64,000 bases of DNA from Klebsormidium nitens (Eukaryota > Plantae > Klebsormidiophyceae): the NCBI GenBank assembly GCA_000708835.1, contig DF237384.1, positions 1 to 64,000 on the forward strand, written 5' to 3'. A model generated the notes under the pieces. That model was given only the letters and a program-made list of their open reading frames with translations, was not told the origin of the DNA and searched no databases. Both the position numbers and the translations under genes were made by a program. Shown piece after piece: positions 902-60,539 of this stretch; the stretch's first letter is position 1, and every line of letters starts with the position of its first letter.

Positions 902-907
902 ATGATG
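902..907 (+). CDS. Possible upstream mini coding exon (ATG ATG) splicing to the acceptor at 1221/1222
   Basis: ATGATG|GTGAGT donor with an in-frame TAG at 893-895. The acceptor gttctcctccccag|TTG TGG ATG at 1222 is in phase 0 with E1. Confidence 0.35.
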
Positions 908-1227
908 GTGAGTGGTGGCGCTGGACACTAATTCATTGCAGCATCCCAACTTGCAGAAGCCTGCTGTGGTGCGGTCCCTTAGCTGCAACAAAAGGGATGG
1001 AAACCTGGATGCTTCCATGCATTACTGGATGTTCATTCTCGATTATGTTCGCGCTTACCAGATTGATCAAAAGGAAAGTGGTTAAAGGCACACTGGCAGA
1101 TGTTACAAGCAAAGAAGCAGCTGATACAATGCATTGCGCCGATGAGCATCAAGCCGAGGGGGCCTTGAAACACAGCCTCACCTTTGAGGTGCTGAGTTTG
1201 GACTGTGGTTCTCCTCCCCAGTTGTGG

Positions 1228-1327
1228 ATGCAGGGGCCTGACCTTGGCAGGTGCTCCGCTTTTCGTCGACGATGTGAATATGTATTGCTTTTTTTCTGCA
1301 TCATCGCGGCCACTGGAGTTGGTCAAG
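1228..1327 (+). CDS. E1, signal peptide
   Basis: MQGPDLGRCSAFRRRCEYVLLFFCIIAATGVGQ has basic n-, hydrophobic h- and small-residue c-regions. Donor CAAG|GTAAGA, phase 1. Confidence 0.75.
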
Positions 1328-4300
1328 GTAAGAATTACACTAGTCTTGAGGCAGTGAAGAACCGGATCATCACACGAGTCCACACAGAGATTCTCATCAC
1401 ATGGAGTTTGTGCTAAAGTCTATCATCAGTTCCAAGACCATCAATATGGAATTAAGCTTGAAGAAGTCAATCAGGAGATGCAGGCAATGAAAGTGCAGAT
1501 GATTGTTCTGGGAGGCTTGCTTCCATTTGAGGCATTGCTCATTTTGGTGCTTTGCACTAGATCCCGAGGGATGTAGAATCAAGTCATCTCAACCACTTGG
1601 TGCAGCTTCGGCAGCAACAGTTGCGGTTAGCGCGTACTGGCCTGGGGCAGGTTCGAATGCAGGTAAGTACTATGCTTGGACCAGTTGGGAACACCAGGTG
1701 GTTCTCCAGGACACCTCAATCTGCATCCTCTATTGACCGCCAAGCGTCGCTCTCTGGCCTTGTTGTGACTCTGGACCTTGGTCCAGTTTCTTCAACTTTG
1801 TATCCAAGCCTTCTTCATATCGGCATCCGATGAGGTTTGCGGATGACAACTCAATCAGCAACAAGCAATTCCTACTTTGATTGAATTCCATCAAGACAAC
1901 AGCCTTTACAAAAGCGAAGCTTTCAAGGATTGAACAGCCTGCCATTGCCAAGGTCGTTCCCCTCATCCCCGCCTCTCACATGTGAGAAGAATGGGACGCA
2001 GTGACTTTGCACATGTAAGAGACTTGCTTGCATCCTTTCTGCATGGTTATTGCAAGCGATCCTGACATTTCCAATTGATACGAGTAACCTCCATCAAGCT
2101 GATAGATATTCCGGGCCTTTTCTCCTTGATAATGCGTGCAAAACTGTAGCCAGCAACAGTCTTTCAGTCACCCCTCAAATAGGTCGGAGCCACAAGAATG
2201 GACACTTTCAAGATGCAAATGGATGTCCCCATTTGCTCAAGCAGATACGAACATATCGTTCTCTCCCACAGGTGGAAGCATCCTTTCAGTTGAGCTGAAC
2301 ACATCACTGCCAGACTCTTATGACACCCTGTACTGCAAGTTTGACAAAACAGTGGTTGCAACTTACGCTTCTGAGGCAAGCAGTACAAGCGGAGGGCCAA
2401 CTGCGTCGTTCATAGTTCCATCCTCTCGCAAGGAGAGGCAAAAGATAGAGCTCGCAGTCAGCTCGGACAACGTCACCTTTGAGGTCTTTGGAAGCTTCGT
2501 CTATTATGGTGGGTTCAACTTCTTTGCTTTCGCTTTTCAATTCTACTACCTTATACCAAGATATGGTGCTGCGGAGAGTTTTGGATTCAGGGGGATGAGC
2601 AGAGGAAAGCGTTTGCAAGCAGACGACTGTCAGCGTAGGAGGCTGAAGATTTCGTTCATGATGAAGCTTTGCCATCGGAAGCATTTTCAATAGTCCAATT
2701 TCTCTGTACTATGAGAAGGGACTCTGCTAATTCGGGAGAAAAGTTCTCACCAGAGGGAAACGAAGCTGTGCAATAGAAGCCTAAAGAATGTTTTTCAGAC
2801 TCCTTTCTCCTTCAAAGCAATCTTGACGACCTTCCTGTCCTTGCTCGCATGCAGAACCTCTACAGATCCACTCCATCGCTCCTGCTGTGGGCCTTGTGAC
2901 TGGAGGCACTCTCGTCCGCATAGAGCTGCAGGCAGACCCGTGGCCAGGCGGTTTCACGCAAGCGCAGGCGGACCTCGTCGCTCAGCCGAGCTGCAGATTT
3001 GACGACATCACAGCCGTTGGATCATACCACGCGCCTGGCTCAGATTCGCTGCCTTCGATCACGTGCAAAAGTCCCCTAGTCAAGGCAGGGCCTGGCCCAG
3101 TCAACCTGACGGTATCGCTCAACGGACAGGAATGGACTTATTCGCGTGCGACGTTTACCTACCTGAATGTTCCGGCCGGGGGGGTTTCACAGCCACTTAT
3201 AATCCAGCAAGTCGCAGAAGCGGAAGCGCTGACCTCCTGGGAAGAATACCTGCTGGCAGCAACCGGAGGGCTGCAAAGCTTTCCCAAGTTCGGGATTGCA
3301 GAAATTGGGCCGTCTAATCCTGGCGTCTACAGAGTTCCCAGTGGTAAGGGGATGTCTTCCGTTACTTTCGACTCAAGCATCTTGACAAGCAGGTTCTGTT
3401 CTTGGCAACTCCTCTGAAAAGTCAAAAAACTCCTTTGCTTCATGACCCCGTCCTGTGTTTCGGTCAAGTCTTCAACTCTCGAAAGGAACGTAGTAATGTT
3501 TCTTTTACATCGCTTGATCCTCTATTGCGTTCAGGGTGCTACTCGGTAGGAGTCAGCTCCCGTGAGTCCCTTCGTACAAGATTCCTTACGCCCGGCCAAA
3601 CGGTCGTTGAGTTCAAAGCAAGGCGTCTTTGCAGGTTGAGCCGAGAAGCTGAATTCAGCTTCAAAGGCGATGTATAGTTGGCATCCTATTTATCCTTGTA
3701 CTCTGCTTTTCAGGGGGCACTTCGTTCTACGGTCCTGGGAGAGACAGCTTTTATGGATCAGGGGATGACGATTTCTACGGTTTGCCATCTGGTAAGGCTG
3801 CCTACCCGTCTTGAAAGGAGAGAGGACTTCTTCTCAATCATCTTGGCAATCATCTTGCTCCGCTCCCTTGCGCTCAAGAACTGCTGATGCTGAGTAAGCC
3901 GATCACAGCTCTTGTTTGTTGAGGATGAATTTCGAAGAAAATATACGCCTTTGACACCTTACTGTATATAAGAGACCCCCTTCTTCCGATATCTTTGGGC
4001 CGCAACTAAGGGGAGCTCCTGGTGTGGAGTGCTTTGCGTACAGAGATGCTTGTTTCCCGTCTCCTTGCACTAACAAGCACGATTGCCCCTCTGGAATCAC
4101 CTTTGCCAGTTGTGGATGCTCAGCAATATGACGTCAGATATCCCTCGGATATAAATTATTGTTGTCAAGTTTTCAACGCTCGACTTTGTTTGTTTGCCCC
4201 TCAGTTCCTGGCTACGTTGCACAGTCCGCCTGTATGTACGCTATGCATCCGCGCGTGGGCCCTGTCACGGGGAGCACGACAGTGTCTATCCTCCTGACTG

Positions 4301-7300
4301 GCCAACTACCCCCTCCCCCGCTCGTGACGCCATTCTGCTCATTTGGCGGTCAGCAAGTTGCGGGAACCTATGGGACTTCTGAGGATAGCCACACCACCAT
4401 ACTCTGCGCCGCACCCGCAACCGATAATGCCACGACTTTGACCGTGCTTTTCAGCCTGGACGGCAGCCACTTCATCTCCGCCGGTGCAAGTTTCACGTAT
4501 TACGGTGAGTCTAGAAATGCGGAAGGGATCAGGTTTGTGTCAACTCCATGCCTGGAAAATGCTTTTGGCTACATGAAGCTGCCGCTTGGTCGTTTGTGTG
4601 TAGTTAAGCTCTGTTGATTGGATCGAACAGGTCAAAGTTTAGAACCATTTTCTACAATCTAAGATCTAGAAGAGACTCTTCGAACTGCCCTGCTTTGCTT
4701 GATAGGAAGCTGATTCCGGCAGAACTAAACTGTCGACAGATGCTTCTAAGGTACCCCGGGGAACTACAGGGGAAGGTCCAACCAATTTATTGCGCTTTGA
4801 CTGTCCAACAGGTGTTGATGTCTGACTGTCCAACAGGTGTTGATGTCCGGCGATCTCGACTTGTACCAAACTTGCCCGCTCTGCTTCCAAAAGCCGAGTC
4901 CTACTCCCCTCTCGAGCAATTCGAATCTCCCCCTCCCTTTCTTGCAGCGCCTTTTGCCGCCAACACCTTCAGGAACGTGCCCCCTGCCCAGGACCAGCAG
5001 TCACCATTCCAGCCCATCATCCCTCTCGACATTTCCATTTTCCCGGTCGAATTCCTTGACTACGACAGCGTTGCACTGACGGCGAGTTGCAGACTAGACG
5101 GCCTGGTCACTCCGGCAGTCTACAACCCCCTGTCAGATGTATACTACTACCCAGACGGGGTGCAAAGCCGGCCGTCGATCAGCTGCTTTACCCGAGGGGC
5201 GGAGGGCGGGGACTTTGTCCTCCAGGTCTCGCTTGACGGCCAGAATTACGTCAACGTGTCGACGCCCCTCAATGCAACAGTAAACTTTAACGGGCCCCAT
5301 GTCGACCTGCCTGCGCTGGACGTCAACGCTACCCTGTCCCTGCGGGCGCGCCCATACTACCCGCTCGCGCCTTCCGTGAGTCTCTGCACGACGTTCAACG
5401 GCGATGCGGCCGCGAGGAAGGCAGCGCTTGCCAGCCTGGCGATCTCAAAGGGGGACCTTGCCCCGGCTTTCAAAGCGCTCGTGCTCGCGTACTCGGCCAA
5501 CCTTCTCTCAAAATCCGCTAGCGGCTTCAGCATCACCGTCGTTCCTGCCGCGGCCGGGTCTCGCGTCCGGGTTGGCACGGTGAAGCTGCAACCCACTTGG
5601 GTTAGCAGCGGGGTTATCGACAACGTATTCTTCCCGACAAACCTGAGCGTGGGTCTGCATAACCTGAGTGTGGAGGTTACTGCTCCCAACGGGCTTAATC
5701 AACTGGTTTACCAAGTTGCACTCTGGGTGCACACTTCGGCGCCCGTCCTCAGCGTCAGCCTGACGGCCGGAAGCCTTAACCCGCCTTTTGATGTCGACGT
5801 TTACGACTACACCGTGGCGCTAGACGCGGGCGTGCGCAGTATCTCGCTCCTGCCAACCCCGACCAACATCTCCTCCACGCGCGCGTACCTCACCAGGCCT
5901 AGTTCCGACCCTGGGTCCGGCCGGACGGTGTATGCGGCTCTCGACTGGTACCGGCGCAGCGGAATCAACCTCTACTCTGACGCGTGGCCGCAGCCCAACT
6001 CGGCGTGCCCCACGTATTCCAGCCTTCACCAAGGGGAGGGCGTTGACGGAATGAACTGGGGCTCACTTATGAGCGGCTGGCCCTGGTGGGCGCCCGGTTC
6101 GTGGCTCCCGGTCTCCCTCGACTGCGTCGAAACCACAGTCGTGCAACTTGTGGTGCAACAAGACGGGCTCCCCACTCGCACCTACACCCTGCGGTTCCGA
6201 AGGGCGGCCGCGGTCTCCACCGCGCCGCTAGGCTTGGCAACGCTGCGGAGCAACTACTGGATGCAAAACGTGGTTCCCCCCTTCGACCCCGCCTTTTTAG
6301 GCCCCTATCAAATCCTCCCAGACCTCCAGCTTCAGTTGGACTACCAGCTCAATCTGGTGGCCACTCCTTCGCAGCCCGGGGCATGCGTGAGGGCGACTCC
6401 CAGTGAGTTTCAGCGCGGGGTTAACAACGTTAACCTAACCGTGACGGCGCTCGACAAGGCGACGGTTACGTACGCGCTGATTCTGGTGGCGCGTTACGAT
6501 GCCCTGGCGGCGACCTCCCTCACAGAGTACAGCCCCACGCGGCCGCCTACCAACGGAAGCGTCCGCGAATATAGCGGGTTCACCGAGACTTATTACGTCA
6601 GGTCGGACGTGGATTACGTCATACTCAGTACATGGACCTGGCTGCCGCAGTCGGTGGTGGCGCTTGACTGCCAAAGTGGCTGTTCGTCTTACGACGCCTG
6701 CACCAAAACGTGCGCCGCTCTCCCAGTGCTGAACGCCAGCCAGTATGCGGAACCGGTGATGACGTCAGTCGACGTCAATTCGCAGGGGCAACTGAGTTTC
6801 GTGGACTGGGCCGCCCGGCGCGCGCAGTGGGCGGTCCCCGTGTCTAGTCTCGGATACACGCGGCTCAACTTGCAGATCGACTGCCAGGGGCTGTGCAACG
6901 ACGAGCGTTTCCCGGGGGCTACCTCGGGGTTATATTCAGTCGTTATTTCCCGCCAGCAGGGGTCGGACACCAGTCTCTCGTCGCTGGGCTTCTCAAACGG
7001 CACTCTTGCGCCCACGTTCAGCGCGGGCGCGAGCGGCTTTTCGGGGACGGTTACAGTGCCAAAGGGTCTGGATGTGGTGCACATCACCGCTGTCGCCACA
7101 GACCCCACGGCTGAAGTCGCTGTGGAAATAGACGGGGCGCCAGCACATCTTCTTCACAGCGGTCACCGGATGGATTTGCCGCCTCCGTTTACTCCGTCGA
7201 TGCTCAAAAACGGCCTGATCGTGCCGCGAAACACGTGGGTTTGGCAGGCTACCCCTCCTAGAGCAAACCAGACCAAGAAGGCGAAATTTGCGGTTACGTT

Positions 7301-19300: not shown

Positions 19301-22300
19301 CAACGGCTTCAGCCAGGCGACGTACCAAGTGGACGTATACGCCGCGGCAGCGCCCGTCGCGGCCGCGTGCCAGCGCCCGTACGCGGCGCAGCCCGTGACC
19401 GCGTGCCTGCGGAGCGTGACCCCGGGGCTGGGCCCCGTTTCGGGGGGCACCCAAGTCCGCCTCCAGTTCCCCCCCAATCAACTGCCTCTGGGGCCCGCCA
19501 CGTGGTACAATCAGTGGACGTTTGGGACGGGTGTCAAGCGGCCTGTATGCCGCTTTGGGGCGCTGACGACCGTCGGAACGTACGGCTCAGACGGCGTTTC
19601 TATCACGTGCGCCGCGCCCGCATGGCCTGACAAGTTCCGGCCAGAGACGGTGCCGGTGTCATTCAGCCTGGACGGATCGACATTCGCGGAGCTGGGGGCG
19701 ACTTACACCTACCACAGTAAGTTTCTTCTTGCACATCAATTTCTTTTTTCGAACATCACTGTCTGGTTGCAAGCTGCGATGGTTTCGATCAACATGGCAA
19801 CTTGAGTACGCACCTCTTTGATGACTGTTCAAATTCAAACGTCAAGCTATGGAAAGCTTTCACATTACTCATTTCGTTCCCTTGATATCGATTTAGCGAC
19901 CGTTGAGCAGCTTGCTTGATCCTGGCTTTCAGCCCTTGTAACCCTTCAAATTTGCGCAAAATGATTCATTGCAAAGACGAGAAGGAAGGAAGACTTTGGC
20001 GCTCCTTTTATGGCTGCGTGTAAACGTTTGTTTGCTATTGAAGTAGGGAGTCGAAACACTCTCAAAATTAAGGAACAAGAGCTGCATCGCAAGAGGTTCA
20101 AAAATTTGCACCTTTCTCTAGACCCAAAACTTCATTCGCTCTCTTGTCGTTGTCCCAGGTGTATTCCAGGCGGGCCCTGTCCTCGGCCTGCCTTCCCCGG
20201 CCTACACTGGGTACCCTCTCCCAGTCGTGGTCCCCCTCACGGGCCTCATCTTCCCGGCCAACTTTTCCACCACCGATCTCCTCACCACCTCTGCTGAGTG
20301 CACTCTCCAAGGAGGCGGAGGACCGGCCGCGACCTACCTCCCCTCACACAACGACTCAACCGGGCCTGCTCTCAGTTGTACCGTCCTGGTGCCTTGGTAT
20401 TACCCTGACTTTTACTGGCAAACGTCCTGGACCCTGGCCGTTGCCTCAACGGCCAAGAATTCGTTTCCGTGCAACAACCAATCAGCTTCGCGCGTCCCAA
20501 CGTCACGAAGTACGACGGATGGAACTATCTGAGGTCGTACGTCAACCCGGGTGTGCGGTTACCTGCCTCGCCGGCTGTGTGCGTCAACTACACCACCGGA
20601 GGCGCTTCCATGAGCGCCTCCCTTGCCAACATATCTCTGAACGCCATTCCGCTACTCCCGCCCTTCGATCCTTCCGTCCAAGTCTATTCCGCCAACGTCT
20701 CGGCGGACGTCTCCCAGGTGAACGTCTCAATCGTCCCCGGCGTTCTGGGCTCGAGTATCAAGGTTAACGGGACGCTTTTGCAGTACGGCTGTGCAAACGG
20801 CACAGACTGCAACAACACCGCAACTCTGCGAATCTCATACGCCGGCCTCAACACTTATGCAATCACCGTTGACTCCCCGAACGGCCTGAATCAGACGGTC
20901 TACCAAATTCTGATCTACTCGGCGCCCGCCACTGACATTTGCCGCCGCCGGCCCTTCCCGCCGCCTGCGCGCACGGCCGCGTGCATTAACGGCGTCGCAA
21001 CGTTCGCTGGCCCGACGACCGGGGGAACTAGAGTGGGAGTTCATTACCCCTACGGTCCGCTGCCGTCAGCCAAAGCCGCTTATTCCTCCGTTGGTATAGC
21101 CCGCTTGAAGCCGCCCACGTGCGCCTTTGGTGAGACACTTACTGTCGGATCGTATGCCTGGGAGGGGGATTATATCACCTGCTACTCACCCCCTCAAGAC
21201 GAGCCTAGGACCGTGGAGCTGCGGATCAGCTTCGATGGGAACACCTTTACCGCCTCCGGGCTGACGTTCTCTTACTACGGTGAGACAAGCTTCCTTACTC
21301 TAGTTGTGCGTAGCTCGCAAATATTGGAGCGTACTCATGTGCTTCCTTCCTTCAACGAATTTACGTTGTTCTAGGAAATTTGGACGTCTAAGAAGGAAGC
21401 TTCTTACTTGAAACTCGTCTCGTCACTCTGACGATGACTTCAATCAGGGTCACAAAACGCGTCGAGCGGACTGGTCTCAAATCGTTCCCGTGCTCCGGAT
21501 CAGCATGCCCATCTGCCTAGAATCAAATATTATGATGGATTTGACCCTACAGGGGTAGGTAGCAAGGTCAAGCTCAGATTTACCCTGGGCCGCAGACAGG
21601 CCCAAACCAGATTCTGGAGTTCTGCCTAAGTTTTATTTTTCAGCAACTTCGCCCCGAACTCAATTCTGCTTAGCCATATTTTGAATTTTGAGTTCTCCGA
21701 GGATATTAAATCACCCGGTAGAACCTTGAAAGGACTTAAGCCGTCCACTTGCAAGAAGGAAGTATTGGACGTTTCGGAATATTGATTCAGCGTAATATGA
21801 CCCTTCTTCAATCCAGTCTTAGGAGGACAGAGTGGCGAGCGAATGTTAGCGGCTCCATCTGGACGAGCTGCTGATTCGGATTCTTGATTCTTTTAATTTC
21901 AAAGAATGGCAAAGAAGCATTTGCTTTCTTACCTTGCTGGTACTAGTCTCTGGTTTCAATCGCTCTGCTCCGTCTTCTTCTCTGTTTTGTAAAATCTCTT
22001 ACGTTTTGTTGAACGAATCGTAGAAGTTTGCGAGAGATTGTCTTCTTCGAGCCGACCAATCTTGGTTCCTTATGGATCTATTGCCCACTCTTAGAAACAC
22101 GCCTTGAAGAGTGCGGCGATTGTTTTGTATGTTGAATCTGTGGCCTCGCACTTTCGACTCGCCGTTCTCATTGCTGTCACGCACAGCTTCAACTCTCACT
22201 TTATTTCAAATTGGCTGAGCTCTGCGTCACGACAGGTCTTCATAGCCTGCAAAGTCTGAAAAAAAGCAACAACACATCAGCTTTAGCTTTGCTCTGCTTC

Positions 22301-52300: not shown

Positions 52301-55300
52301 GGTATGGTGACCTAGTTCGTACTTGGTTAGACTGGTTCAACCTGGCCAAGCTTTGTTAAATCTTGACTTAAACCTCTGATGATCTTAACTTAGACCTTGC
52401 GCTGAAAAATTGCAACACGGAGAGGCTTCGCTGCCCCTCACCTGACATCCTCGACTTTATTTCCATTTGTGAAGGGCCCCTCCGACAACGCGACCGCGGC
52501 GCTGGCTGCCAAGCTGGCGGCCTTCACCGCGGCGGGCTCGTTCCCGGCCATCACTCTGTCCGCCACCGACCTCCAGCCCGGCACTGGCTACACCTTCACG
52601 TTCGTGGTTCAGAACTTCATGGGGACCGCCAGTGCCCCCGCCCAAGTCACGACCACCAAGCAGACCAAACCCGTTCCGGTCGTCTCGATCGTCGGCTCCG
52701 GAACGGAAAACCGGCGCACCGCCAGCCGGGGCGACACCATCGAAATTCAGGCCAACGCGGCCGTTCCGTCCAAGCTGGCTTGGGTGAACGGAAACTGCGT
52801 TCCGGCGGATTCCGCCGACCTGCCGATGGTGTTCCAGTGGCAGCAGCTGGCGGGCCCGCTGGTGGACCTGTCTAGTTACCCGCCCAACTACCAGGCGTCG
52901 TTCCAGTCCAAGACGCTGACAGTGCCGGAGAGCGCGCTCGCGCTCGGGAAGGACTACACGTTCCAGGTGCGGCCTGAGAGGCTGACGCTTGCTTGCCCCC
53001 TTTCAACCATCCTCACAGGACGGCAATGGTTTCTGAACTGCCTTGCTTCCGACACCAGTCTGATGATGCTTCGAAGGGCTTTCTTCTGATTTTGGCGTAA
53101 ATTGTAGAGGCCAATTTTCACAGAGAGGTGCTGCCATTGTACTGAACTATTGCAGCTCAAGCCTCGACTCCCCGGCCTGATTGGAACCAAGGTGAAGCCT
53201 GAAGCTTCTCATAACCTTCCCTGGTTCCTGCAGTCGGAGCAGGTTTTTCGTCCGTACTTCGTGTCCGGAGGAATTGCTAATCCCCATTATTAAATCCTTT
53301 GATACTGTGCCCCTCTAGGTATCTTGTGCGATGAAGGACGGCGGCGTGCTTGGCCAGGCTTCCACGGCGCAGGTGGTCCTCAGCCTGGCCCCGTCCCCGC
53401 TCTCCGTCAGCATCGCGGGCGGCAGCCGCCTTCTGGGCACCACCCAGAACCTCACCCTTGCCGCTTCCGCCGCCGATCCGGACGGTTCCGTCGACCAGAA
53501 CGGGACTCCGTTTCCGTTCGCGTACCAGTGGGCCTGCAACGCGAGCCTGCCCGCGCAGGCGGCCGCGGCGCTGTTTCAGAGCGACGCGGGGAACAACTTC
53601 GGGCAGCAGCTGGTCATCCCGGCGGGGGGGCTGCCCGAGGGGGTGTACGGCTTCACCGTCCAGGTAGGGGGATCGGCAGCAGGCTGCGGATAGGATTACT
53701 TCGTGGTGACTTGTTTCACGCACAAGAGGAGAGAATCCTGACTCGTTGGACATTGACCTGTACCCCGTCCTATATGAAAACTCTCAGCAGGTAGGTAGCT
53801 GCACTCATTTACTGCTTGAGGAGTTGTTAAGCGGTGGGACCAGAACCAGTTTGACCGTTGGTCACTGCTTCGAGCGGTGATGGACATCAAGTCTGAGTAG
53901 TTATGAGTACGAGCTGTAGATCGCGAGACAAGCTTCTACCTTGGAGTCCCAGCGGCTCACAAGCAAGCACTGTCTCCTCAATATAGCGGCCTCTTCTACC
54001 CTGTTTCAATACCGCAACCTCAGGAAGTCATGTCTGTATCTCCCGTCGCCAAAGTGTAGGGAAACCTTACGCCTAGGAGCTTTGCCAAACCTGCAGGTTT
54101 CTCGCGAGCCGCTAACGGCTGGCCGGTCTTTGGTGCCTGCGAGCGCCACCATAACGGTCCAGGCCGCGGGAGTGATCAGCCTGGACGTCAAAGTAGTGGG
54201 CAGCGCGAAACTGGACGGCCTGCTGCCATCCACGCAACTCCAGCTGCAGTGCTCTGCCAACGACGACACGAGTGTGAAGAAGAACAGCATCGCGTATTCC
54301 TGGGCCATCAAGTCAGACAGCGACCCCCGGGGCATCGACGATCTGGCCCCGGGGTATGACGACGGCAAGCGGAAGCTGCGTGTCAAGCCCAACAGCTTAC
54401 TGGGCGGGCACGTGTACCAGCTGACGTGCGCGGGCGTCAGCACCGAGGGCGTAGGCGCGGCCGGCTTCGCGACTGTGTCGGTGAAGGTCTTGGGGGTGCC
54501 ATCGGGAGGAAGCGTCAGCCTGCAGCGCTCGCAGGTGGGTGACTTCAGAAGGGTCTCCGGATCCAAGTCTTAATTGCCTTTTGAACGGCTGATTCCTCCA
54601 TTTTAACGTGGCAGAGTGCTGTCGCTCGCCTTTGTATTTGGATTTATTTTAGTCCGGAGCTCACTTTTGTTTTGCTTGATAATCTATAGTACAAATTATG
54701 GAGATGATTCCAACTTGGGAGCACTTAAGGTTTATACAGGTTGAACAGGGCCAACGCGCTGACCTCCTGGTTGTTCTCCCATGCTTGGCTGTTGATGTCC
54801 CTTCTTGTTAGCTGATAGACCGCCAACAGTAAGCAAAACAAGGCAAGGATTAAGGCGCAGGGTCCAGCGCTCCTCTCTTCAGATTAAGAAGAGACTTGAC
54901 TTGCTCTGCAGTACCGATCAAAGTGGGGCAGGCACTCGGAGCACATGAGGCCGCAGATATACCTCTGCGGATGTCCATCCTGTTGGAACCGAGAACAGAT
55001 TCCAGCATACTCGAAACGATCACAGCATCATTCGTCAGCTTAGGCCGCGCTTCGCTTGCGAGTCACATTTGTCCTTTCCTCGCAGGCTGCTGACGTGGCG
55101 GCCAGCACGCAGTACACATTGAAGGCCGTTAATTTTGTGCCCAGCGACGACGCCCTTCCGGGCTACCTGCTGTACCAGTTCCGCTACAGCCTAAATGGCG
55201 GAACGGAACAGATCATCGTGGCCATGTCCACCGAGAACAAGGCCAAGTTTGTGCTACCGGCGGGCCAGATTGTTCTCTTGGCTTACGTCAGCAACCCCGG

Positions 55301-58300
55301 AACGCTGGCGTCAGTGCCTGGCGATCAGCCGCCAGGGTTCCGGTGAGCGAGGAGCCAACCAGGTTCATTGCTCATTATCCAACGGGCAGGGTCGCTTGCT
55401 ATGACCGGCACTTTGCAAAGCAATACTGACAACAATTTTCGTCGAAATATTGACCTTCACTCGCACCCTCGAACGTTTCCAATCTCTCAACGACAATTGT
55501 TTGACCTGCATCCGGTGATCTACTAGCTTATTGGTGCATCTGAATCCCTCTTTTTCTCGCCAAGCCGGTCGCTTTGAAACTTCCTCATTCGTTATTCCGC
55601 GACCTTCAGGTACGCTTTCGAGCCGTTCAATGTCTCGAGCCCCTCGACAACAAGCAAACCCAAGCGGCGGAGCCTGCTCAGCACCGACTCGACATCGAAC
55701 CTCGTCGCCTTGGGACGCGGGCTGCTCTCCTTCGACAGCGTCAACTACACGGCGGCGCAGGAGAGCTACGAGAGCGTTTTTCTGCCGGCGGCTTACCAGA
55801 CCCCGGACTACGCGGCAGTGCTGTCGTGGGCCGCCTCTTGGGGCGCCACTTTCGCGCCCGCGGACGCTCTGACGCTGCCGTGCGGAGAAGGGGACCAGCA
55901 GATGATGCTCAACAAAGCGGACGTCCTCAAGATGATCGGCCACCTGGATCCCCTCAGCCCACCCGCCTTCTCACCGGGTGAGCACCCCGGTCGGCGGACC
56001 TCTGCATCTCGTTCCGGTTTCTCGTTCGAGCAGCGACCCGAGAGTATCGGTGACCAGACGTTTTGCTGCTTCACGCTTCTCTAACTCCGACAAATTGATG
56101 CCGTGGTGCAGCAGGTTCGGTTTTGCATGTTGTCCCAAACTATCTCGGCGCAAGATTCTGCTTTACCATAAGGCAAAGGCGTCTCCATATTGACCAATTG
56201 AGCGGCCCTCGAGATGGGGTAGCCTGTCAAATTAAGTTAACGTGTTTACAACATGACCATCAACTTTCCCCACAAGTCGGGACAGTCACATATTTCCTTC
56301 GCATAAGATAGACATTTAACCATCTTCTGGCCGCTGGTCAAAACCGGTTACGATCTCGCTTTCGTTGTTAGAGACAAGCAGCCCAGAAATGAGCATGCAA
56401 GCAGAAAGAGTCACAAAAGCACGCCGTTTCGATCGTTTACTGGCTGCTCTTCCTCGCCCGGACTTGAAGTCCCTCGCTGACGCCATGTCCTCTTTCCCTG
56501 ACGTCAGGCGTGACGAGCAGCACCGGCGCCACCATTGCCAACCTCCACGCATGCGCGCTGACGTCACTCCTCCAGGTAGCCGACGAGGCCGACCTTTCCC
56601 TGGTCGTCTCCCCGAACCCCAATCCGCTCTCGGCGACCGTCGCCGAAACCGCGCCCGCGGTTCAAACCGCGCTCACCACCTTCCTGAGCAAGCTCCAGCT
56701 AGTCGCGCTCCACGGGCTCGCCACGTCGCCCTGCGCTGGCGCAGGCGCGGCCGCGTGCGACAGCTATGCCTGCTTCCGCGGCGCAGCCGACGTGCTCCTG
56801 CGCGCGCTCGCGCTGCACTGCGGCCGCCCCATGGTGCCGCTGCGCTGGTGGCTTGATGTCGCAGCATATACCCCGCTCGCGCTGGCGCGCGTATACGCCC
56901 AGGACCCCTCGGTGTCAACAACTGGAAACGCTACAACGTTCTCGGCGACCACCTACGCGGGCGCTGCGGTGACGGCGTCGCCCAGTTCCACGCCTAGGGT
57001 GCAAGCAAGCGCCGGGGCGTTTGCGTTTGTTGCGGACGTGTCTGGTGCGGGTGACGTCAGTGCTTACTGTGTGGCGTACGAGGACGGGCTGGACCTCGTC
57101 CCCGGGGCTCCGCCGTCGACGCTGAAGACCGCGGCGCTCTTCTTTGAGCAGGATCTAGGTAAGCACCGCGCAAAATGAGTTCGGCCCTTTTGTTCAACTC
57201 GTCCGAGGCGTTGCAGTTCAGGGAGAAGAGCTTTGGTTCTGAAAGGTTCGGGTATGAGCAGAGCTACAGCCTTCAAACGACTGTTTTTTTGACAAAGAGC
57301 TCAAGAGCATTCACGCAACCTGAATGATCCTTCAAAAGGTTGCAAATTTTGATCCTTACCGAGCACCAACAGAGGGTAAGTCAAATAGAGTGCTTAACTA
57401 AGATATGCTCTTTCCGAGTATTCAAGAACCTCATGCATCTAGGGCGAGGTTTACAAACTGATATACGAGAGCAAATCTTACCGGATGGCTTAGTCCTTTC
57501 CGGTGACGAATCAGGTTTGTCTCGTCGACGCTTGTATATGGATTACTGTAAGAAAGAACTTACCTGAAAGCAAGCAAATGTACTCGCTTCTACTGCGAGC
57601 TGATGCACAAACTCCAAAACTCGGTCCCATGTTTCAAAGCAGATTGAAGGGTCAAATTCAGACAAGATCTTGAGTGAGGCACGTGTAAGAAGATATCACA
57701 AACGACCTCAGCCTCACCGAAAGTTGCAGTGGATGTCGAACCCTCATCAATGCTCATTGACCCTGGCTCTTTCCGTCGCAGCTCCGTACGAGCCCTCGTC
57801 CGGGAGCCTCATCTTCACCGGCCTCAGCGCCCCGCCCCCCCGGCTCATCTACGCCGTTGACGTGTACCAAGCCAACGGCTGCGATATCTGGACGATGCCG
57901 CCTCTGGTTACGACCAGCTACACCACGTGCGTGTGGACGCCTGTCTCCACCAACCTGTCCGCACCGTACGACGCGGCTGCGTCCACCGCGACCGCGGCCG
58001 CCACCGTCTGGAACGCGGTCTACGTCCTACACACCATTCCGGCTCCGCTCCCCGTGACTTCCGTTTCCGTCACAGTTTTCAATCCCAGCTGGGACCAGCA
58101 GCCCACAATCGCTGCCACCACAGGGAGTCTGAGCGTATCGGCGACCACGGCGGGAACAAATGCTGGCGGCGGGTCGCCCCACGACCCTATCACGCTCATG
58201 GCGGTTTCTTACGCGGGCGGCGCTCAGCCCGTTCCGCCGTCCAGCCTTCCGGTGTCCGGCTCCGCCCCGATGGCCGCCGCGGCGGCTTTCTTCACCCAGG

Positions 58301-59502
58301 GTTTGGCTGGGGCATATCAACCGGCCTCTGGGGGGCTCACCTTCAGCGGCGTTCCGCCCCCTTGGAGCGGAACCGTACACGTTGTCGACTTCTACCGGGT
58401 GGCGAACTGTACGATCACTTCACCTCCGCTGACGTCAGAAGCTTACGGGGCATGCACATGGGTGGTTGCCGCGAGGGGGATCCCCGTCGCGCTTGCGGTT
58501 GCTCCGCAGACCGCCACTTTCTCACCCGCCCGCGGGTTATGGAACGGTGTTTACGTCCTGTACCTGGCAAACTCCAGTTCCGTTCCGCTGGTGCCGGATC
58601 CGTTACCCCCCGTGACGAGCACGGCGGTCACCGTGCTCCCTGCGATGAACAGCACGCTCGCTGCGCAGAGCGGCGCCGTCTCATTCTCCTGTGCGGCCTC
58701 CGGTTTGTTGGCGATAACCGGGTACGTGGCAAATTACCCAACGGCTGCCCAGGTGCCAATTCCGGACGGCCTGTTACCTCCCGCCTTGATTTCCGCCGCC
58801 GCTCTTTACCTGACCCAGGGACCTTCCAACAACCCCTATTTCCCGGGCTCAGGAGCGCTGCTGTTCAGCGGCGTTCCCGCACTTCAAGCAAGCTCCCAAA
58901 CCCGGGTTCTCGACATAGCCGCCGGCTACCAAGCGCAGTACGTGGTGGACATCTTCGAGGTCGGCCCCGACTGCTCCCCGCAGATGCCCCCCGCCGGCCC
59001 GTCCGCCTTTGCGGGCTGCACGTGGTCCCTGGTTGCCGCCAACCGGTCGGTCCAGCACGACCCTGCCGCGCGTACCGCTATGGTCGCCCTGTCGAGCGCC
59101 ACCCACCAGAACGGGGTGTATGTACTCCACGTTGCGGACGTTCCGCTGACCGCTGGGCCGACGCCGGACTCCGCCACGCCCACCCCGGCGCCTGGAGCGA
59201 CCGGCTCACCCTCCTCGCCGCCCGCGCCAAGGCCACCCAACGGAACGGCCCCGAACGTCACACTGGCCCCGGGCGGTGCGCTTCCGACGACCGACAACGG
59301 AACCGGAAAGGGAACGGTCAGCGCTAGTGGGAGTACCGGCAAGACGACAATCATCATCGTGGGGGCAGTAATCATTGGGGTTCTCATCTTGGGCTCCGCG
59401 GCTGTTGCCGGTGTCCTCATCCAGAAAGCCGAGGGCCAGGTGCGCTATCGCCGCCGCCGGGCGCCAATCGCCGCTGTGGCAGGACCCTCTCAGCCGCAGT
59501 AG
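1228..59502 (+). CDS. Giant (~12,070 aa) multi-exon type I membrane/cell-surface protein: IPT/TIG + cadherin-like + filamin-type repeats + Ser-Pro shaft + PKD/REJ-like region + single TM (49 exons, listed individually below)
   Basis: 49 segments, each bounded by AG/GT with polypyrimidine tracts. All consecutive intron phases match, and motifs are rebuilt across junctions (RDA|AGN, DNGD|GTY, VYDT|YGN, QLR|DAYGN, VAR|DAFGN). There is one signal peptide at the start and one TM plus stop at the end. The model needs correction of two 1-bp deletions and two false gaps. Confidence 0.8.
1561..1662 (+). CDS. E2, start of IPT type A #1
   Basis: ctttgcactag|AT... DPEGCRIK...VSAYWPGAGSNAG, donor G|GTAAGT, 102 nt, phase 1-1. 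Confidence 0.75.
2272..2508 (+). CDS. E3, IPT type A #1
   Basis: ttctctcccacag|GT GGA; GSILSVEL...YCKFD...ASFIVP...FGSFVYYG|gtgggt. Homologous to E13 and E28. Confidence 0.85.
2855..3343 (+). CDS. E4, IPT type B #1 plus linker
   Basis: EPLQIHSIAPAVGLVTGGT...CRF...C...VSLNGQEW; donor G|GTAAGG; 489 nt, phase 1-1. Confidence 0.88.
4205..4504 (+). CDS. E5, IPT type C
   Basis: SACMYAMHPRVGPVTGSTTV...FCSFGG...FSLDG...FTYYG|gtgagt; 300 nt. Confidence 0.9.
4798..4847. repeat. 25-bp tandem duplication in intron 5
   Basis: tgactgtccaacaggtgttgatgtc x2. Confidence 0.95.
4948..7466 (+). CDS. E6, divergent IPT (X) plus 5-6 cadherin-like beta-sandwich domains
   Basis: ccctttcttgcag|CG; motifs LASL..GDLAPAF, SLNPPFD.DVYDYTV, SLSSL..GTLAPTF, VEVTAPNG..Y; donor ACG|GTGAGC, phase 0. 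Confidence 0.88.
7930..9460 (+). CDS. E7, further cadherin-like domains; contains a 1-bp deletion (~8478) and a false gap
   Basis: ctccttcgcag|ATA AGC; FTVTAEDG, LRVTPQDD, LLRPAFSPSIYAYTL, ISVASED; donor CAG|GTAAGA. True length is about 1305 nt after removing the overlap. Confidence 0.8.
8671..8803. other. Assembly gap (133 N), probably a false gap or overlap
   Basis: The left flank 8578-8670 (which contains n calls) is a noisy copy of the right flank 8804 to ~8893. Confidence 0.85.
9619..9913 (+). mobile_element. LTR remnant (likely the 3' LTR of a copia-like retrotransposon) in intron 7
   Basis: TGTCAAATG...CATTTGACA 9-bp inverted termini, a PPT-like AAGTGGGGGTG at 9608-9618 directly upstream, and AATAAA at 9691. 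No TSD and no coding region seen. Confidence 0.5.
9786..9896. repeat. 56-bp tandem duplication (2 copies, 1 mismatch) inside the LTR remnant
   Basis: aaggttggggcacgcctcaatccaggcgac(a/c)atacaacgacctgggtgtgatgcg x2. Confidence 0.95.
10032..10149 (+). CDS. E8, start of a filamin-type repeat (missed by the ORF track)
   Basis: ttctccttcag|AAC; NLVIRPGAISPATSRLILADGVTLDLEDESPVTVIQRDA; donor G|GTGAGG. Bridges phase 0 to phase 1. Confidence 0.85.
10585..10930 (+). CDS. E9, filamin-type repeat
   Basis: AGNLITT...LHDGTFSVTYAAKLAGRY; donor AG|GTGAGT, phase 2. Confidence 0.88.
11384..11652 (+). CDS. E10, filamin-type repeat
   Basis: cttcttttgcag|C; FWMVPKDQYGN...AGTYTLRVLIHG; donor C|GTAAGT. Confidence 0.88.
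11834..11884 (+). CDS. E11, 51-nt mini-exon
   Basis: cctgtccttgcag|CT; PQPDLVNNNWPWLARYA; donor G|GTAAGC, phase 1-1. Confidence 0.7.
12261..12311 (+). CDS. E12, 51-nt mini-exon (start of IPT type A #2)
   Basis: tttcctttgcag|CG; STDLVDAYYPGAFSTSG; donor G|GTGAGA. Confidence 0.78.
12777..13052 (+). CDS. E13, IPT type A #2
   Basis: GAYLTLTLL...VCRFDSTTVV...VTFLVPP...FGSLMYHG|gtaaga. Confidence 0.88.
13455..13895 (+). CDS. E14, IPT type B #2
   Basis: EPLSVDSVSPPSTPLGGG...ASLNGLEW; donor G|GTGAGT. Confidence 0.88.
14382..14693 (+). CDS. E15, IPT type C
   Basis: cttactaatcgcag|GT; PACMEGIFPSVGPLSGGT...FTYYG|gtgagt. Confidence 0.9.
15105..16499 (+). CDS. E16, array module 1 (X-IPT + cadherin-like + IPT); includes a false gap
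   Basis: Branch point cactaac, ctgctcag|CG ... FYHG|gtgagt. Loop GQLP-VSGNCWWCSPNYNRFQPAINA-KNPVC. True length 1155 nt. Confidence 0.88.
15609..15752. other. Assembly gap (144 N), false gap
   Basis: 15513-15608 is identical to 15753-15848 (96 bp). Confidence 0.9.
16930..18042 (+). CDS. E17, array module 2
   Basis: 1113 nt, phase 1-1. Loop GQAP-PALGNWMYGQQSAGPT-KPPVC; donor T|GTAAGT. Confidence 0.9.
18613..19716 (+). CDS. E18, array module 3
   Basis: 1104 nt, phase 1-1. Loop NQLP-LGPATWYNQWTFGTGV-KRPVC; donor A|GTAAGT. Confidence 0.9.
20159..21279 (+). CDS. E19, array module 4, with a 1-bp deletion at 20442/20443
   Basis: 1121 nt (one short of 1122). The conserved VSLNGQEF motif is split between frames (gtt gc ctc aac ggc caa gaa). 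Confidence 0.85.
22358..23488 (+). CDS. E20, array module 5
   Basis: 1131 nt, phase 1-1. Loop NQLP-LGPVNWWDWWSNSNYGSGV-KKPVC. Confidence 0.9.
23858..24985 (+). CDS. E21, array module 6
   Basis: 1128 nt, phase 1-1. Loop GSF-SYLYSVPTVYSPGDWQWRQLWTV-KQPVC. Confidence 0.9.
25302..26423 (+). CDS. E22, array module 7
   Basis: 1122 nt, phase 1-1. Loop GQLP-SNMGRDGFWDV-KLPIC. Confidence 0.9.
26998..28155 (+). CDS. E23, array module 8
   Basis: 1158 nt, phase 1-1. Loop GGLP-SFAANYYWGWGSDSGSQF-KPPVC. Confidence 0.9.
28590..29720 (+). CDS. E24, array module 9
   Basis: 1131 nt, phase 1-1. Loop GQLP-LGYPNWWNWGSYGTDA-KLPLC. Confidence 0.9.
30128..31255 (+). CDS. E25, array module 10
   Basis: 1128 nt, phase 1-1. 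Loop GQLP-LGSFRGYWEQWASFGAKA-RRPVC. Confidence 0.9.
31645..32778 (+). CDS. E26, array module 11
   Basis: 1134 nt, phase 1-1. Loop GQLP-LAAGSYGYSWYTAASTV-KNPVC. Confidence 0.9.
33223..34113 (+). CDS. E27, X-IPT + cadherin-like + start of IPT type A #3
   Basis: ttttttccttctgcag|AC; VSLNGQDF; ATLASLSLDSGYLNPAF; ends VRSYGPGLSSYGG|gtgagg; 891 nt. Confidence 0.88.
34529..34780 (+). CDS. E28, IPT type A #3
   Basis: GIKLSVVL...YCQFDSVVV...VTFVVPP...FGVFQYHG|gtgagg. Confidence 0.88.
35064..35432 (+). CDS. E29, IPT type B #3
   Basis: EPLHIASFAPAMGSTAG...ACKFG...VSLNGQEW; donor G|GTAAGG. Confidence 0.88.
35832..35924 (+). CDS. E30, Pro-rich linker exon (missed by the ORF track)
   Basis: GYPEEFPPGPPTSFPPAQGPSQSPSICLDER; donor A|GTAAGC; 93 nt, phase 1-1. 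The acceptor is weaker. Confidence 0.65.
36241..36953 (+). CDS. E31, filamin-type repeats
   Basis: ttttctctgtttttccag|AC; ITIRARDANG...DHGDGTYLVSF; donor ATT|GTGAGT, phase 0. Confidence 0.88.
37576..38693 (+). CDS. E32, filamin-type repeats
   Basis: VRLMDFFGN, YPLDAYNN; donor AG|GTGAGT, phase 2. Confidence 0.88.
39434..39778 (+). CDS. E33, filamin-type repeat
   Basis: ccacttttcag|G GAC GCC TAC GGC AAC (RDAYGN); donor AC|GTGAGC. Confidence 0.88.
40275..41576 (+). CDS. E34, filamin-type repeat plus ~320-aa Ser-Pro shaft
   Basis: (T)YGNLRSSG...GSPFAATIMP-(SP-rich)-ARIPANAS; donor GT|GTAAGT, phase 2. Confidence 0.88.
40520..41480 (+). repeat. Low-complexity Ser/Pro/Ala coding repeat with internal 42-bp and ~54-bp duplications
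   Basis: PSPSPS tracts. SAQPSPSTSASPST is exactly duplicated at 41221-41304, and SSSPAPSASPSPSSSAAP occurs twice near 40595-40710. Confidence 0.95.
42062..43833 (+). CDS. E35, filamin-type repeats
   Basis: DHADGTY, DNLDGTY, KDKNG, DVYGN, DAFGN, DLYGN; donor G|GTGAGC. Confidence 0.9.
44448..46541 (+). CDS. E36, filamin-type repeats
   Basis: The junction forms DNGD|GTYNISF; RDAYGN, NNYDGTY, RDQFGN, DNRNGQY; 2094 nt. Confidence 0.9.
46710..46937 (+). CDS. E37, filamin-type repeat
   Basis: The junction forms SDA|GGNRIT; donor G|GTAAGA; 228 nt. Confidence 0.85.
47311..47573 (+). CDS. E38, filamin-type repeat
   Basis: ARDSYGN...YTPAKAGVYQ|gtaagc. Confidence 0.88.
48069..50200 (+). CDS. E39, filamin-type repeats
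   Basis: YDDQGN, DNRDGTY, RDAAG, DNQDGTY; donor AG|GTGAGA. Confidence 0.9.
50543..50750 (+). CDS. E40, filamin-type repeat
   Basis: The junction forms VAR|DAFGN; donor CAG|GTGAGG. Confidence 0.88.
51100..51397 (+). CDS. E41, last filamin-type repeat
   Basis: ISVVPGAISA...VTAKDAAGN; donor G|GTGAGT. Confidence 0.88.
51682..52190 (+). CDS. E42, start of PKD/REJ-like region
   Basis: APTSVGVCDPVTLDASASSGSGGRGLQFSY; donor CAG|GTGGGC. Confidence 0.85.
52475..52966 (+). CDS. E43, REJ-like
   Basis: LQPGTGYTFTFVVQNFMG, FQWQQLAGP, LALGKDYTFQ. Uses an AAG acceptor (ttccatttgtgaag|GGC). Confidence 0.8.
53319..53663 (+). CDS. E44, REJ-like
   Basis: LSVSIAGG...LTLAASAADPDG...YQWAC...LPEGVYGFTVQ|gtaggg. 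Confidence 0.88.
54097..54534 (+). CDS. E45, REJ-like
   Basis: AYSWAI...LRVKPNSLLGGHVYQLTC...PSGGSVSL; donor CAG|GTGGGT. Confidence 0.85.
55086..55342 (+). CDS. E46, end of REJ-like region
   Basis: YTLKAVNF...LYQFRY...FVLPAGQIVLLAYV; donor CG|GTGAGC. Confidence 0.85.
55610..55977 (+). CDS. E47, contains KRRSLL motif
   Basis: gaccttcag|G TAC; ...TSKPKRRSLLSTDS...; donor G|GTGAGC. Confidence 0.8.
56508..57158 (+). CDS. E48, Ala/Leu-rich probably helical region plus start of juxtamembrane repeat 1
   Basis: 651 nt, phase 1-1; ends KTAALFFEQDL; donor G|GTAAGC. Confidence 0.85.
57782..59502 (+). CDS. E49, terminal exon: Cys/Trp repeats, Pro-rich linker, TM helix, short basic tail
   Basis: ctctttccgtcgcag|CT; TM IIIVGAVIIGVLILGSAAVAGVLI at 59350-59421; tail QKAEGQVRYRRRRAPIAAVAGPSQPQ; stop TAG at 59500. 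Confidence 0.88.
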
Positions 59503-60539
59503 ATGTGGCCGCCTGCGAACAATTGTAAGATGGTCTCTTAGCAGACGATTCGATGCAGGCGGCGGCAACGTGACGCTCATTTTGCGACTCTGCTCGTATA
59601 GTTCAGCATGCTCATTGTATTAGCTAAGCAAGTGTGTAACACTGAAGCCCCGAGCCAAGGCTATGGGCGCTAGAGTCCAGTTGGCTTGTGCTAAGCCGAG
59701 GTTGGACGAACAGCCACCATTTAGGATATCACCACCTCAATCAGGAAAGAAGCTCGACTTCATATCACGCTATCCGGCAGGCACGATGCAATTGTCGCTT
59801 GCAGATCCACGTCTTACACCTGGTTCTTTACCGTCAAACCGCATTTTGGCAATTTGCATATCAGCATTTCACTGATGCATCAAGAACAGTGAAGCGCGGC
59901 GGCATAACATGCTACTTTGGAAATCTACTGAATGCATGTATGGTTCCGACAGCTCTACGAGCACACCCGTTCATATGCAGGTCGCAAATTAGACCGTAGT
60001 CGTTTCGTGTAAGCAACACTTGATTATGGACGCATTATGTTCTGACCGGCCCTTGATTTGAGTTAAGGATGCATTGTGCGAGTAAGTGTTCGGGTGCATG
60101 TGGCCATGCGTGCACGCTGGTGCCTTAACCGGATTCTGCAGTGTGTCGACTTGTGAGCGGCACCTTGGCCAGGGTCACGAATTGGGTTCTGAATGCTCGT
60201 GCCCCAGCTACCAAGACAAGTACATGGTGTGCGCCACGCATGCCCTTTTGACGCACATGTCTGGGCGTCCAAGCGAGCGTTCTTCATCATCTCCTACCTG
60301 TACAACGGTTCATCAAGTGAAGCCTTTCTTGGAGTCTTCAAAACGGAAAAACTTGCTCAAACTCTTTGTTGTTGGTTCTATTCTTCCCGAAGAACCGTGG
60401 CTCCTCAAAGGAGCCGCACTAAAAAGCAAGGGCAGATTCCAACAACGCTGACTACAAACAGTGCAGCTTTCTTGCGTGCCCACCCCCGGGGCTTTCCGTG
60501 AGGAGCCTCACTTTGAAAGAGGCGCTGCCGTCCGCGGCC

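Follow-up and report, generated by a model that had tools for sequence, protein, structure and literature searches.

The 64,000-nt window analysed here, positions 1 to 64,000 of contig DF237384.1 of the streptophyte alga Klebsormidium nitens (assembly GCA_000708835.1), is eukaryotic DNA of 57% G+C with two runs of N. On its plus strand the region from about 900 to 59502 (about 58.6 kb) probably constitutes one gene of about 50 exons, whose predicted product is a membrane protein of type I with about 12,000 amino acids (aa). We favour a single gene because the locus has a collinear orthologue, because its exons are under purifying selection, and because in more distant homologues the 5′ exons and the exons for the filamin, REJ and transmembrane (TM) parts are phase-matched at intron distance. 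A sequence-only reading of the same DNA had likewise proposed that a surface protein with a single membrane pass is encoded here by one giant gene; comparative genomics (51 kb of collinearity, purifying selection, homologues) speaks for it, whereas the RNA data and a reading frame broken twice do not.

Exon chain and conservation of the locus

A splice-aware dynamic program over GT-AG introns, run with a minimum exon size and with codon scores and splice matrices trained on the window alone, recovered a plus-strand chain of 49 exons (E1–E49) between 1228 and 59502, with a total exon length of 36,678 nt; the Ser-Pro exon, E34, was corrected by hand afterwards. All 48 junctions are GT-AG and phase-compatible, which reproduces the 48 consecutive phase-matched introns of the sequence-only reading. 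The window-trained consensus is AAG/GTGAGT at the donor and a pyrimidine-rich stretch followed by GCAG at the acceptor, and the introns measure 89–1078 nt. Over the gap-free stretch from E21 to E49 the chain scored 2836, as against 54 for the minus strand and about 10 for shuffled sequence; it is far above chance level. Forty-seven of the 49 exons are free of in-frame stops, the exceptions being E8 and E20. The earlier claim that motifs are completed across junctions also holds for many domains, since at least 15 predicted joins (those within REJ included) have a domain completed across them, among them E3/4, E9/10, E10/11, E14/15, E29/30, E31/32 through E36/37, E38/39, E39/40 and E41/42. A first pass of the program had skipped the true stop via 59439 and inserted micro-exons of 3–27 nt; that model was dropped after retraining of the splice matrices and the setting of a minimum exon size.

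The orthologous locus of a close relative is represented by two Logan contigs from one sample, 85–89% identical to the window protein at the aa level. It is collinear with positions 731–52130 of the window, and all twelve tandem modules described below are present one-to-one. The ratio of nonsynonymous to synonymous substitution rates (dN/dS) is 0.06–0.36, at dS 0.27–0.61, in 27 of 27 exons tested between E9 and E41; by block it amounts to 0.08–0.32 in E9–E16, 0.12–0.36 in E18–E28 and 0.10–0.36 in E29–E33. E7 has an orthologous open reading frame (ORF) of 838 aa, E29–E33 are conserved at the exon level, and the 51-nt mini-exons E12 and E13 stand out as conserved islands with intact splice sites. 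Seven of 12 introns give no alignment with the close relative.

Unlike most introns, those at 41577–42061, 50201–50542 and 36954–37203 can be aligned to the close relative without a break, at an identity of about 80%, within blastn blocks 40271–43878, 48065–50755 and 36238–37203 respectively, and may contain conserved regulatory elements or unrecognised alternative exons. The 5′ edges of E29 and E38 are uncertain: the relative's best model places the acceptors 30 nt and 15 nt downstream (34499–34528 and 47296–47310), in frame in both cases.

At the 5′ end the chain needs amendment. The ATG at 1228 reads ATA in the close relative, and the acceptor ccag/TTGTGG six bases upstream of it is conserved. 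Further upstream a block near-identical in the two genomes holds ATGATG (902..907, plus strand), followed by the donor gtgagtgg, which scores 8.2 in both; this mini-exon joins the acceptor at 1221/1222 in phase 0. Because ATG 1228 is not conserved and the ATGATG with its donor is, translation probably starts in the mini-exon, which brings the count to 50. The 49-exon chain from 1228 claimed earlier was reproduced, except that a further exon likely precedes it and that E8 and E20 are out of frame as assembled. The mini-exon contributes four further residues and does not alter the signal-like core. E1 (1228–1327, or 1222..1327 from the acceptor; ending in phase 1) encodes the signal-peptide-like hydrophobic core YVLLFFCIIAATGVG; the N-terminus consists of a basic stretch and a 15-residue hydrophobic core, conserved in the close relative and in the more distant homologue Sm. 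Sm, too, starts with a short signal-like exon whose end is in phase 1; upstream of it is a PP4R3-like gene unrelated to it. Of the one signal peptide and one TM segment claimed for the protein, the single N-terminal signal-like segment and one strong TM segment followed by a stop are both present; it is the ATG at 1228 that is not conserved.

Two distant homologues were compared, one (Sm; L006/L004/L003) a second locus in the close relative's sample, the other (Jm; L007/L005/L002) a Joint Genome Institute (JGI) metagenome contig. Both are about 46–48% identical in aa sequence to the window protein. Each has exons corresponding to E1–E10 in phase and, very nearly, in length (for E9/E10, 118/346 nt in the window against 118/343 nt in Jm; the E7 counterpart of Jm has 2501 nt and the phases of the window) and, at intron distance, counterparts of E31–E42. 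E11–E30 are absent from both. In their place stands a single large exon, of 3049 nt in Sm and of 2194 nt in Jm and running from phase 2 to phase 0, whose start matches E11 and whose end matches E31. In the window E11 runs from phase 2 to phase 1 and E12–E30 are all phase 1-1. Since the flanking exons belong to one gene in Sm and Jm, which are without the block, E11–E30 is a lineage-specific internal expansion within one gene. The exons of the homologues that resemble E3 and E4 find their best matches in E14 and E15 of the window, which suggests that the expansion arose by duplication of the gene's 5′ part.

A third homologous locus (L008) covers the 3′ end. Its counterparts of E40–E49 measure 208, 298, 512, 489, 345, 414, 251, 377, 672 and 1607 nt, as against 208, 298, 509, 492, 345, 438, 257, 368, 651 and 1721 nt in the window, with identical phases, and the stop follows the TM segment as it does in the window. 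With gene callers of the prokaryote style, the homologous loci fall apart into many ORFs.

Domain architecture of the predicted protein

Conceptual translation yields a protein of 12,071 aa, X standing at the three breaks, that is rich in A, S, V, P, G and T. This product, of some 1.2–1.3 MDa before glycosylation, would start with a signal peptide and continue through TIG and Cadherin-like sandwiches, twelve modules and about 28 filamin-type repeats broken by a Ser-Pro shaft. After these would come REJ, two to three units of the GAIN-B/ZU5-like kind, a single TM helix and a basic tail of 26 aa. Beta-sandwich domains occur in nearly all long plus-strand ORFs from 2 to 59.5 kb. In Pfam terms these are PF12733 and IPT/TIG up to 34 kb and filamin, Ig_GEX2_N and Invasin_D3 at 36–51 kb; similarities to Big_1 are also present. 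Self-trained hidden Markov models called 28 filamin-type, 15 Cadherin-like, 14 TIG and 15 module-N-terminal Ig/IPT-like domains, 72 in total, which is a minimum, about 1,100 aa of E7–E8 carrying no call. Set against these figures, an earlier hand count of about 30 IPT-like domains was about right, that of about 20 filamin domains too low, and that of about 20 cadherin-like domains too high with respect to the 15 detected so far.

The N-terminal part begins with E2–E6 (1606–1662, 2245–2508, 2855–3343, 3714–3791 and 4205–4504), all phase 1-1 and carrying TIG/IPT-type domains. The cutoff of PF01833 (IPT/TIG; 20.9 bits) is exceeded with 34.1, 27.0, 22.8 and 21.3 bits, the latter two in E2–E6, and several TIG copies of the modules score just under it. 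E7 (4948–7466; 2519 nt, 839 aa, phase 1 to 0) encodes an Ig-like domain and several Cadherin-like beta-sandwiches, and E8 (7930–9460; a single exon, phase 0 to 0) contains a frameshift and the first of two false gaps. There follow E9–E12 (10032–10149, 10585–10930, 11384–11652, 11834–11884) and E13–E16 (12261–12311, 12777–13052, 13455–13895, 14382–14693). PF12733 (Cadherin-like beta sandwich; cutoff 24.2 bits) scores 35–56 bits in E7 (5e-15), in E8 and in every module tested. No classical cadherin EC repeat (PF00028) was matched in any scanned exon, and Cadherin_5 appeared below threshold only, with 18.9 bits; "Cadherin-like" is a Pfam name here and denotes no classical cadherin.

Twelve tandem modules of one exon each make up E17–E28, every one of them composed of an Ig/IPT-like, a Cadherin-like and a TIG domain in that order and 32–44% identical to the others. 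E17 (15105–16499) is module 1 and contains the second false gap; E18–E22 (16930–18042, 18613–19716, 20159–21279, 22358–23488, 23858–24985) and E23–E28 (25302–26423, 26998–28155, 28590–29720, 30128–31255, 31645–32778, 33223–34113) are phase 1-1, and E28 is truncated. An AlphaFold2 (AF2) model of one module, with a predicted local distance difference test score (pLDDT) of 69, shows three beta-sandwiches, which Foldseek aligned with the IPT ectodomains of plexin A and Met (E 4e-10 to 1e-7), with titin Ig tandems and with protocadherins; the module sequence itself had no match in the PDB. The only long loops with pLDDT below 50 are at about residues 111–143 and 296–316, between the domains. These loops are length-variable, aromatic-rich and fixed in position (for example 24190–24288 in E22).

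One might suppose that the twelve phase 1-1 module exons are cassettes, so that individual mRNAs carry subsets of them and the protein is shorter and variable, with diversity of the Dscam kind. E12–E30 are all phase 1-1, and any subset would be in frame; the modules have diverged to 32–44% identity with variable, low-confidence loops; and the distant homologues function without the array. Each module, however, has a one-to-one orthologue under purifying selection, which fits constitutive use equally well, and we regard cassette use as rather unlikely.

Between E29 and E33 (34499–34780, 35064–35432, 36241–36953, 37576–38693, 39434–39778) TIG-type domains give way to filamin-type ones. E34 (40275–41576) encodes the Ser-Pro shaft, preceded by the end of one filamin repeat and followed by the beginning of the next. 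The shaft, claimed earlier, is real: an SP-rich tract of about 323 aa at about 40510–41478, which is probably hydroxyproline-glycosylated and of polyproline-II conformation. The phases match when 41576 is spliced straight to 42062, and filamin domains are completed on either side of the exon. A reading of this region in frame 2 with small exons at 40872–41400, 41525–41576 and 41665–41699 lost to the single frame-0 exon.

The main array of filamin/GEX2-N-type Ig domains lies in E35–E38 (42062–43833, 44448–46541, 46710–46937, 47296–47573) and E39–E42 (48069–50200, 50543–50750, 51100–51397, 51682–52190). PF00630 (filamin; cutoff 26.9 bits) gives 149.3 bits in E35, 98.7 in E36, 111.8 in E39, 37.7 in E31 and 30.2 in E41, with E-values in the E35–E42 array of 6e-44, 3e-28 and 3e-32. 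PF23616 (Ig_GEX2_N; cutoff 27 bits) gives 48.9 bits in E36, 31.7 in E35 and 30.2 in E39. Against PDB sequences the array matches gelation factor (1e-12).

The REJ domain is encoded in E43–E46 (52475–52966, 53319–53663, 54097–54534, 55086–55342). Scored singly, E44 alone passes the PF02010 cutoff of 25 bits (26.1 bits, profile positions 70–148), and the match continues collinearly in E45 (195–321, 23.4 bits) and E46 (327–384, 17.9 bits); these consecutive profile positions support the REJ-like region noted in the sequence-only reading. E47 and E48 (55610–55977 and 56508–57158), between REJ and the membrane, belong to no named family and had no significant Pfam match. The last exon, E49 (57782–59502, with the stop at 59500–59502), contains juxtamembrane beta-sandwich units of about 175 aa each, repeated over about 58048–59142, then a putative TM helix at about 59344–59421, the sole segment above a Kyte-Doolittle value of 2.0 (2.88), and the basic 26-aa tail.

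RNA, frame breaks and the juxtamembrane stalk

Several observations weigh against one continuous gene and its giant product, the first of them from RNA. Of the single gene proposed earlier, RNA supports transcription of the 3′ part: runs X1–X4, all from one study (P1), contain 58–65% of the sampled words of 44448–50200, and 20 other runs of the species contain essentially none. X1 and X4 contain 0.00 of the sampled words at 1228–8600, and a search of the runs for this 5′ part turned up none that contains it. The interval 33700–39699 yields only five RNA contigs, of 190–250 nt and a depth of about 3, with nothing on 33700–37800. Three of the five lie in E32 or E33, and two are intronic or unspliced (38989–39209 within an intron, 39323–39572 across the 39434 acceptor). 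There are no joints in the contigs over 33700–39699, and no splice junction was verified. The two intronic or unspliced contigs could represent pre-mRNA, DNA carry-over or intron retention. Transcription extends back at least to 37.8 kb, fading towards the 5′ end, and the pattern is equally compatible with 3′-biased sampling of a rare 36-kb mRNA and with a shorter 3′ transcript.

Under the conditions sampled, the shorter transcript could start at an internal promoter upstream of about 37.8 kb and encode only the filamin, REJ and TM part, there being no single mRNA, and with the 5′ part and the array silent, separately transcribed or confined to another life stage. This would explain why the same runs give a word share of 0.58–0.65 at 44448–50200 and 0.00 at 1228–8600, and why depth is zero over 33700–37800 with mere traces at 37.8–39.7 kb. 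An ATG with a signal-peptide exon was, however, not found in 34–42 kb, and filamin/Ig domains are split at every junction from E29 to E37 save E30/E31. Moreover, the 5′ exons of the homologues adjoin the filamin part in phase, the 5′ and array exons are under in-frame purifying selection, and a steady fall of coverage from 3′ to 5′ is what one would expect of a very long and rare mRNA. We consider an internal promoter very unlikely.

A second difficulty is that the reading frame is broken as assembled in E8 and E20. The assembly also contains the two runs of N. Gap 2 (N 15609–15752) is flanked by an exact 96-nt duplicate (15513–15608 = 15753–15848), present as a single copy within a continuous 474-aa ORF of the close relative; cutting out the Ns and one copy (240 nt) preserves the frame and leaves a module of normal size. 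At gap 1 (N 8671–8803) the left flank, 8578–8670, which includes three Ns, is an error-rich copy, about 93 nt long, of 8804–8894; both flanks map to one segment of the close relative, and the single-exon homologues align straight over the join with nothing lost. Since the flanks are duplicates and the relatives have a single copy, both gaps are false gaps between overlapping, unmerged contig ends, and the exons run through them. The same artefact of unmerged contig ends may inflate or break other genes in this assembly.

In E8 the frame changes near 8456–8459, where a G+C-rich run has 2 extra bases with respect to the close relative; the three frame pieces are collinear on the intact 441-aa ORF of the relative and on the single exons of Sm and Jm. 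The indel lies 120–215 nt from a contig end with Ns and about 13 errors per 93 nt. E20 has 1121 nt (2 mod 3), being one base short at about 20441 (20441..20442), within a conserved "L-x-V-S-L-N-G" strand, and if it is included as assembled the frame meets a stop at 20530–20532. Its orthologue (P0012, a 461-aa ORF, 85% identical) and all of its paralogues are in frame. Both frameshifts fall inside a conserved beta-strand. Two introns were tried as remedies, one of 89 nt (20397–20485) in E20 and one of 191 nt (8224–8414) in E8, and rejected; each deletes a conserved beta-strand and the orthologous ORF is uninterrupted in either case.

Errors of the draft assembly are more likely than real lesions, because the E8 break is near a poor contig end and about 28 kb of coding sequence downstream is under constraint without any further stop or frameshift. 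On another view, the gene is real in the lineage but a recently inactivated pseudogene in this strain: the 2-nt insertion in E8 would be genuine, as would the 1-nt deletion in E20, and the strain would make no protein of 12,000 aa. We consider this very unlikely. The assembly has both indels where the orthologue has neither, and some 20 of the 24 runs show negligible expression, but the E8 indel is close to an error-rich contig end in an assembly with two false gaps, exons past both lesions have dN/dS of 0.06–0.36, and E20, being phase 1-1, can be skipped without loss of frame.

The third set of observations concerns the membrane end. The AF2 model of E49 is all-beta (pLDDT 69), and the TM segment is not helical in it (pLDDT about 30). 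In VIA-align, units 89–266 and 274–453 of E49 fell on the GAIN-B subdomain of CD97, with Z of 9.5 and 8.6, and the units also align with GAIN-B of CELSR1, BAI3, GPR126 and latrophilin and with ZU5 of ankyrin, UNC5 and NLRP1/CARD8; matches to the GAIN-B/ZU5-like fold span Z 7.8–9.5, and values of 8–9.5 exceed only modestly the background of 7–8 stated for VIA-align. In the model the resemblance is consistent but only moderately strong. The canonical GPS motif (HL followed by T/S, after CxC) is not visible in E49. With the whole E49 model Foldseek gave weak multi-domain matches only and the ESM Atlas nothing usable (scores of 0.75 or less), and the E49 sequence had no match in the PDB. Lastly, a function in wall-crossing, adhesion, recognition or mechanosensing is plausible from domain content alone.

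Relation to known surface proteins and possible role

A word-index search of 5.8 billion proteins with E36 gave 5 matches, none of them a long or named homologue, and phmmer with E49 against 1.84 billion representatives gave 6, all of 538 aa or less. The absence of a long homologue from the two protein libraries fits the earlier suggestion that this gene is undescribed as a unit. In the literature we found no paper tying Klebsormidium to a giant GEX2-like gene, or REJ domains to green algae.

Among known systems the protein resembles polycystin-1 and suREJ (PKD1, PKREJ, suREJ1-3), which have a large Ig-like ectodomain followed by REJ and GAIN-type units beside the membrane; suREJ1 has a single TM segment, as here (PMC10855541). 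Unlike these, the algal protein is without the 11-TM, PLAT and channel-like parts and without a recognisable GPS motif: neither PLAT nor PKD_channel was matched in Pfam, and with a single TM segment it has no 11-TM channel-like C-terminus. Its Ig-like domains are of the filamin, TIG and PF12733 types rather than PKD repeats, it is 3-8 times longer, and it is from a green alga. The REJ match spans profile positions 70–384 of 452, one exon alone being above the Pfam cutoff.

With GEX2 and FUS1 it shares the layout of a type I membrane protein with a string of filamin-related Ig-like domains in its ectodomain, and the Ig_GEX2_N cutoff is passed. FUS1, the GEX2 orthologue, has seven Ig-like domains that resemble those of filamin, and the two are gamete adhesins (PMC13601591). 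Theirs, however, are proteins of some 1,000 aa with about 7 domains, as compared with about 28 filamin-type and about 45 other domains, REJ and an SP shaft here. GEX2 and FUS1 were not among the sequence matches (the PDB search gave gelation factor), and the likeness seen is one of domain family.

Mstax, the axial protein of about 8,000 aa of Chlamydomonas mastigonemes, is likewise a giant membrane-anchored extracellular filament of a green alga with a segment rich in Ser-hydroxyproline (Hyp) and a link to polycystin (bioRxiv 10.1101/2024.12.24.630281). In Mstax there are lectin domains, 34 Hyp repeats and a multi-pass region like that of PKD2, in contrast to the Ig-like arrays, one short SP shaft and single TM segment found here, and no sequence relation was seen. 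Fibrocystin/PKHD1 and plexin/Met resemble the protein in having tandem IPT/TIG domains in a single-pass receptor; unlike them, it showed in the scanned exons no Pfam match to G8, PbH1, Sema or PSI, nor to a kinase or GAP cytoplasmic part. Giant bacterial adhesins of the SiiE, LapA and MpIBP type and titin-like rods share with it dozens of tandem beta-sandwiches in a long rod. It differs from the adhesins in its eukaryotic, intron-rich gene and in a TM anchor rather than type I secretion system (T1SS) or cell-wall anchoring, and from titin in being extracellular and not sarcomeric. The protein lacks defining features of each family compared and is best filed as a giant Ig-repeat surface adhesin or receptor.

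We picture it as an extended rod anchored in the plasma membrane, with a length of about 0.4 µm if about 80 domains contribute 4 nm each and the shaft about 100 nm. The variable distal modules would bind a ligand of the wall, the substrate or a partner cell. REJ and the GAIN-like stalk may form a force- or ligand-sensitive element, as in the ectodomains of polycystin-1, suREJ and adhesion G-protein-coupled receptors (GPCRs), and the stalk would presumably act on a partner protein because the 26-aa tail is too short for signalling alone.

A bolder view can be put forward, which we rate as quite unlikely in its entirety. By it, no larger membrane protein would have been described in the green lineage, the rod being about 0.4 µm long with some 80 Ig-like domains; REJ and the GAIN-B-like stalk would be an algal counterpart of the ectodomains of polycystin-1, suREJ and adhesion GPCRs without the channel or GPCR part; and the array would be recently expanded and perhaps alternatively spliced. 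The whole would serve as a stage-specific receptor for recognition between cells, or of gametes or zoospores, on account of the GEX2/FUS1-type Ig repeats and of expression confined to the samples of one study. To our knowledge the sexual cycle of this alga is poorly documented.

If there is one protein, it would be among the largest of Viridiplantae, and its juxtamembrane REJ/GAIN-like module, joined here to arrays of the filamin/GEX2 type and of PF12733, would be a rare one for an organism that is neither an animal nor a relative of animals. In function it is a candidate for adhesion across the wall or for mechanosensing, in a streptophyte alga near the land-plant stem. The locus also exemplifies the growth of a giant adhesin, the close relative sharing the twelve modules and two distant homologues having the flanking exons in phase without them. 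For annotation it is an instructive case, with homologous loci split by callers and a draft with two frame breaks and two false gaps.

The ORFs flanking the gene (997–1227 and 60.5–63.6 kb) have no Pfam match; in the latter region (60500–63650) there are several of 150–240 aa, on both strands, all without such a match. TGTAA is the poly(A) signal of green algae, and motifs of this sequence at 59525–59529 and 59635–59639, 25 and 135 nt past the stop codon, are possible 3′ end signals.

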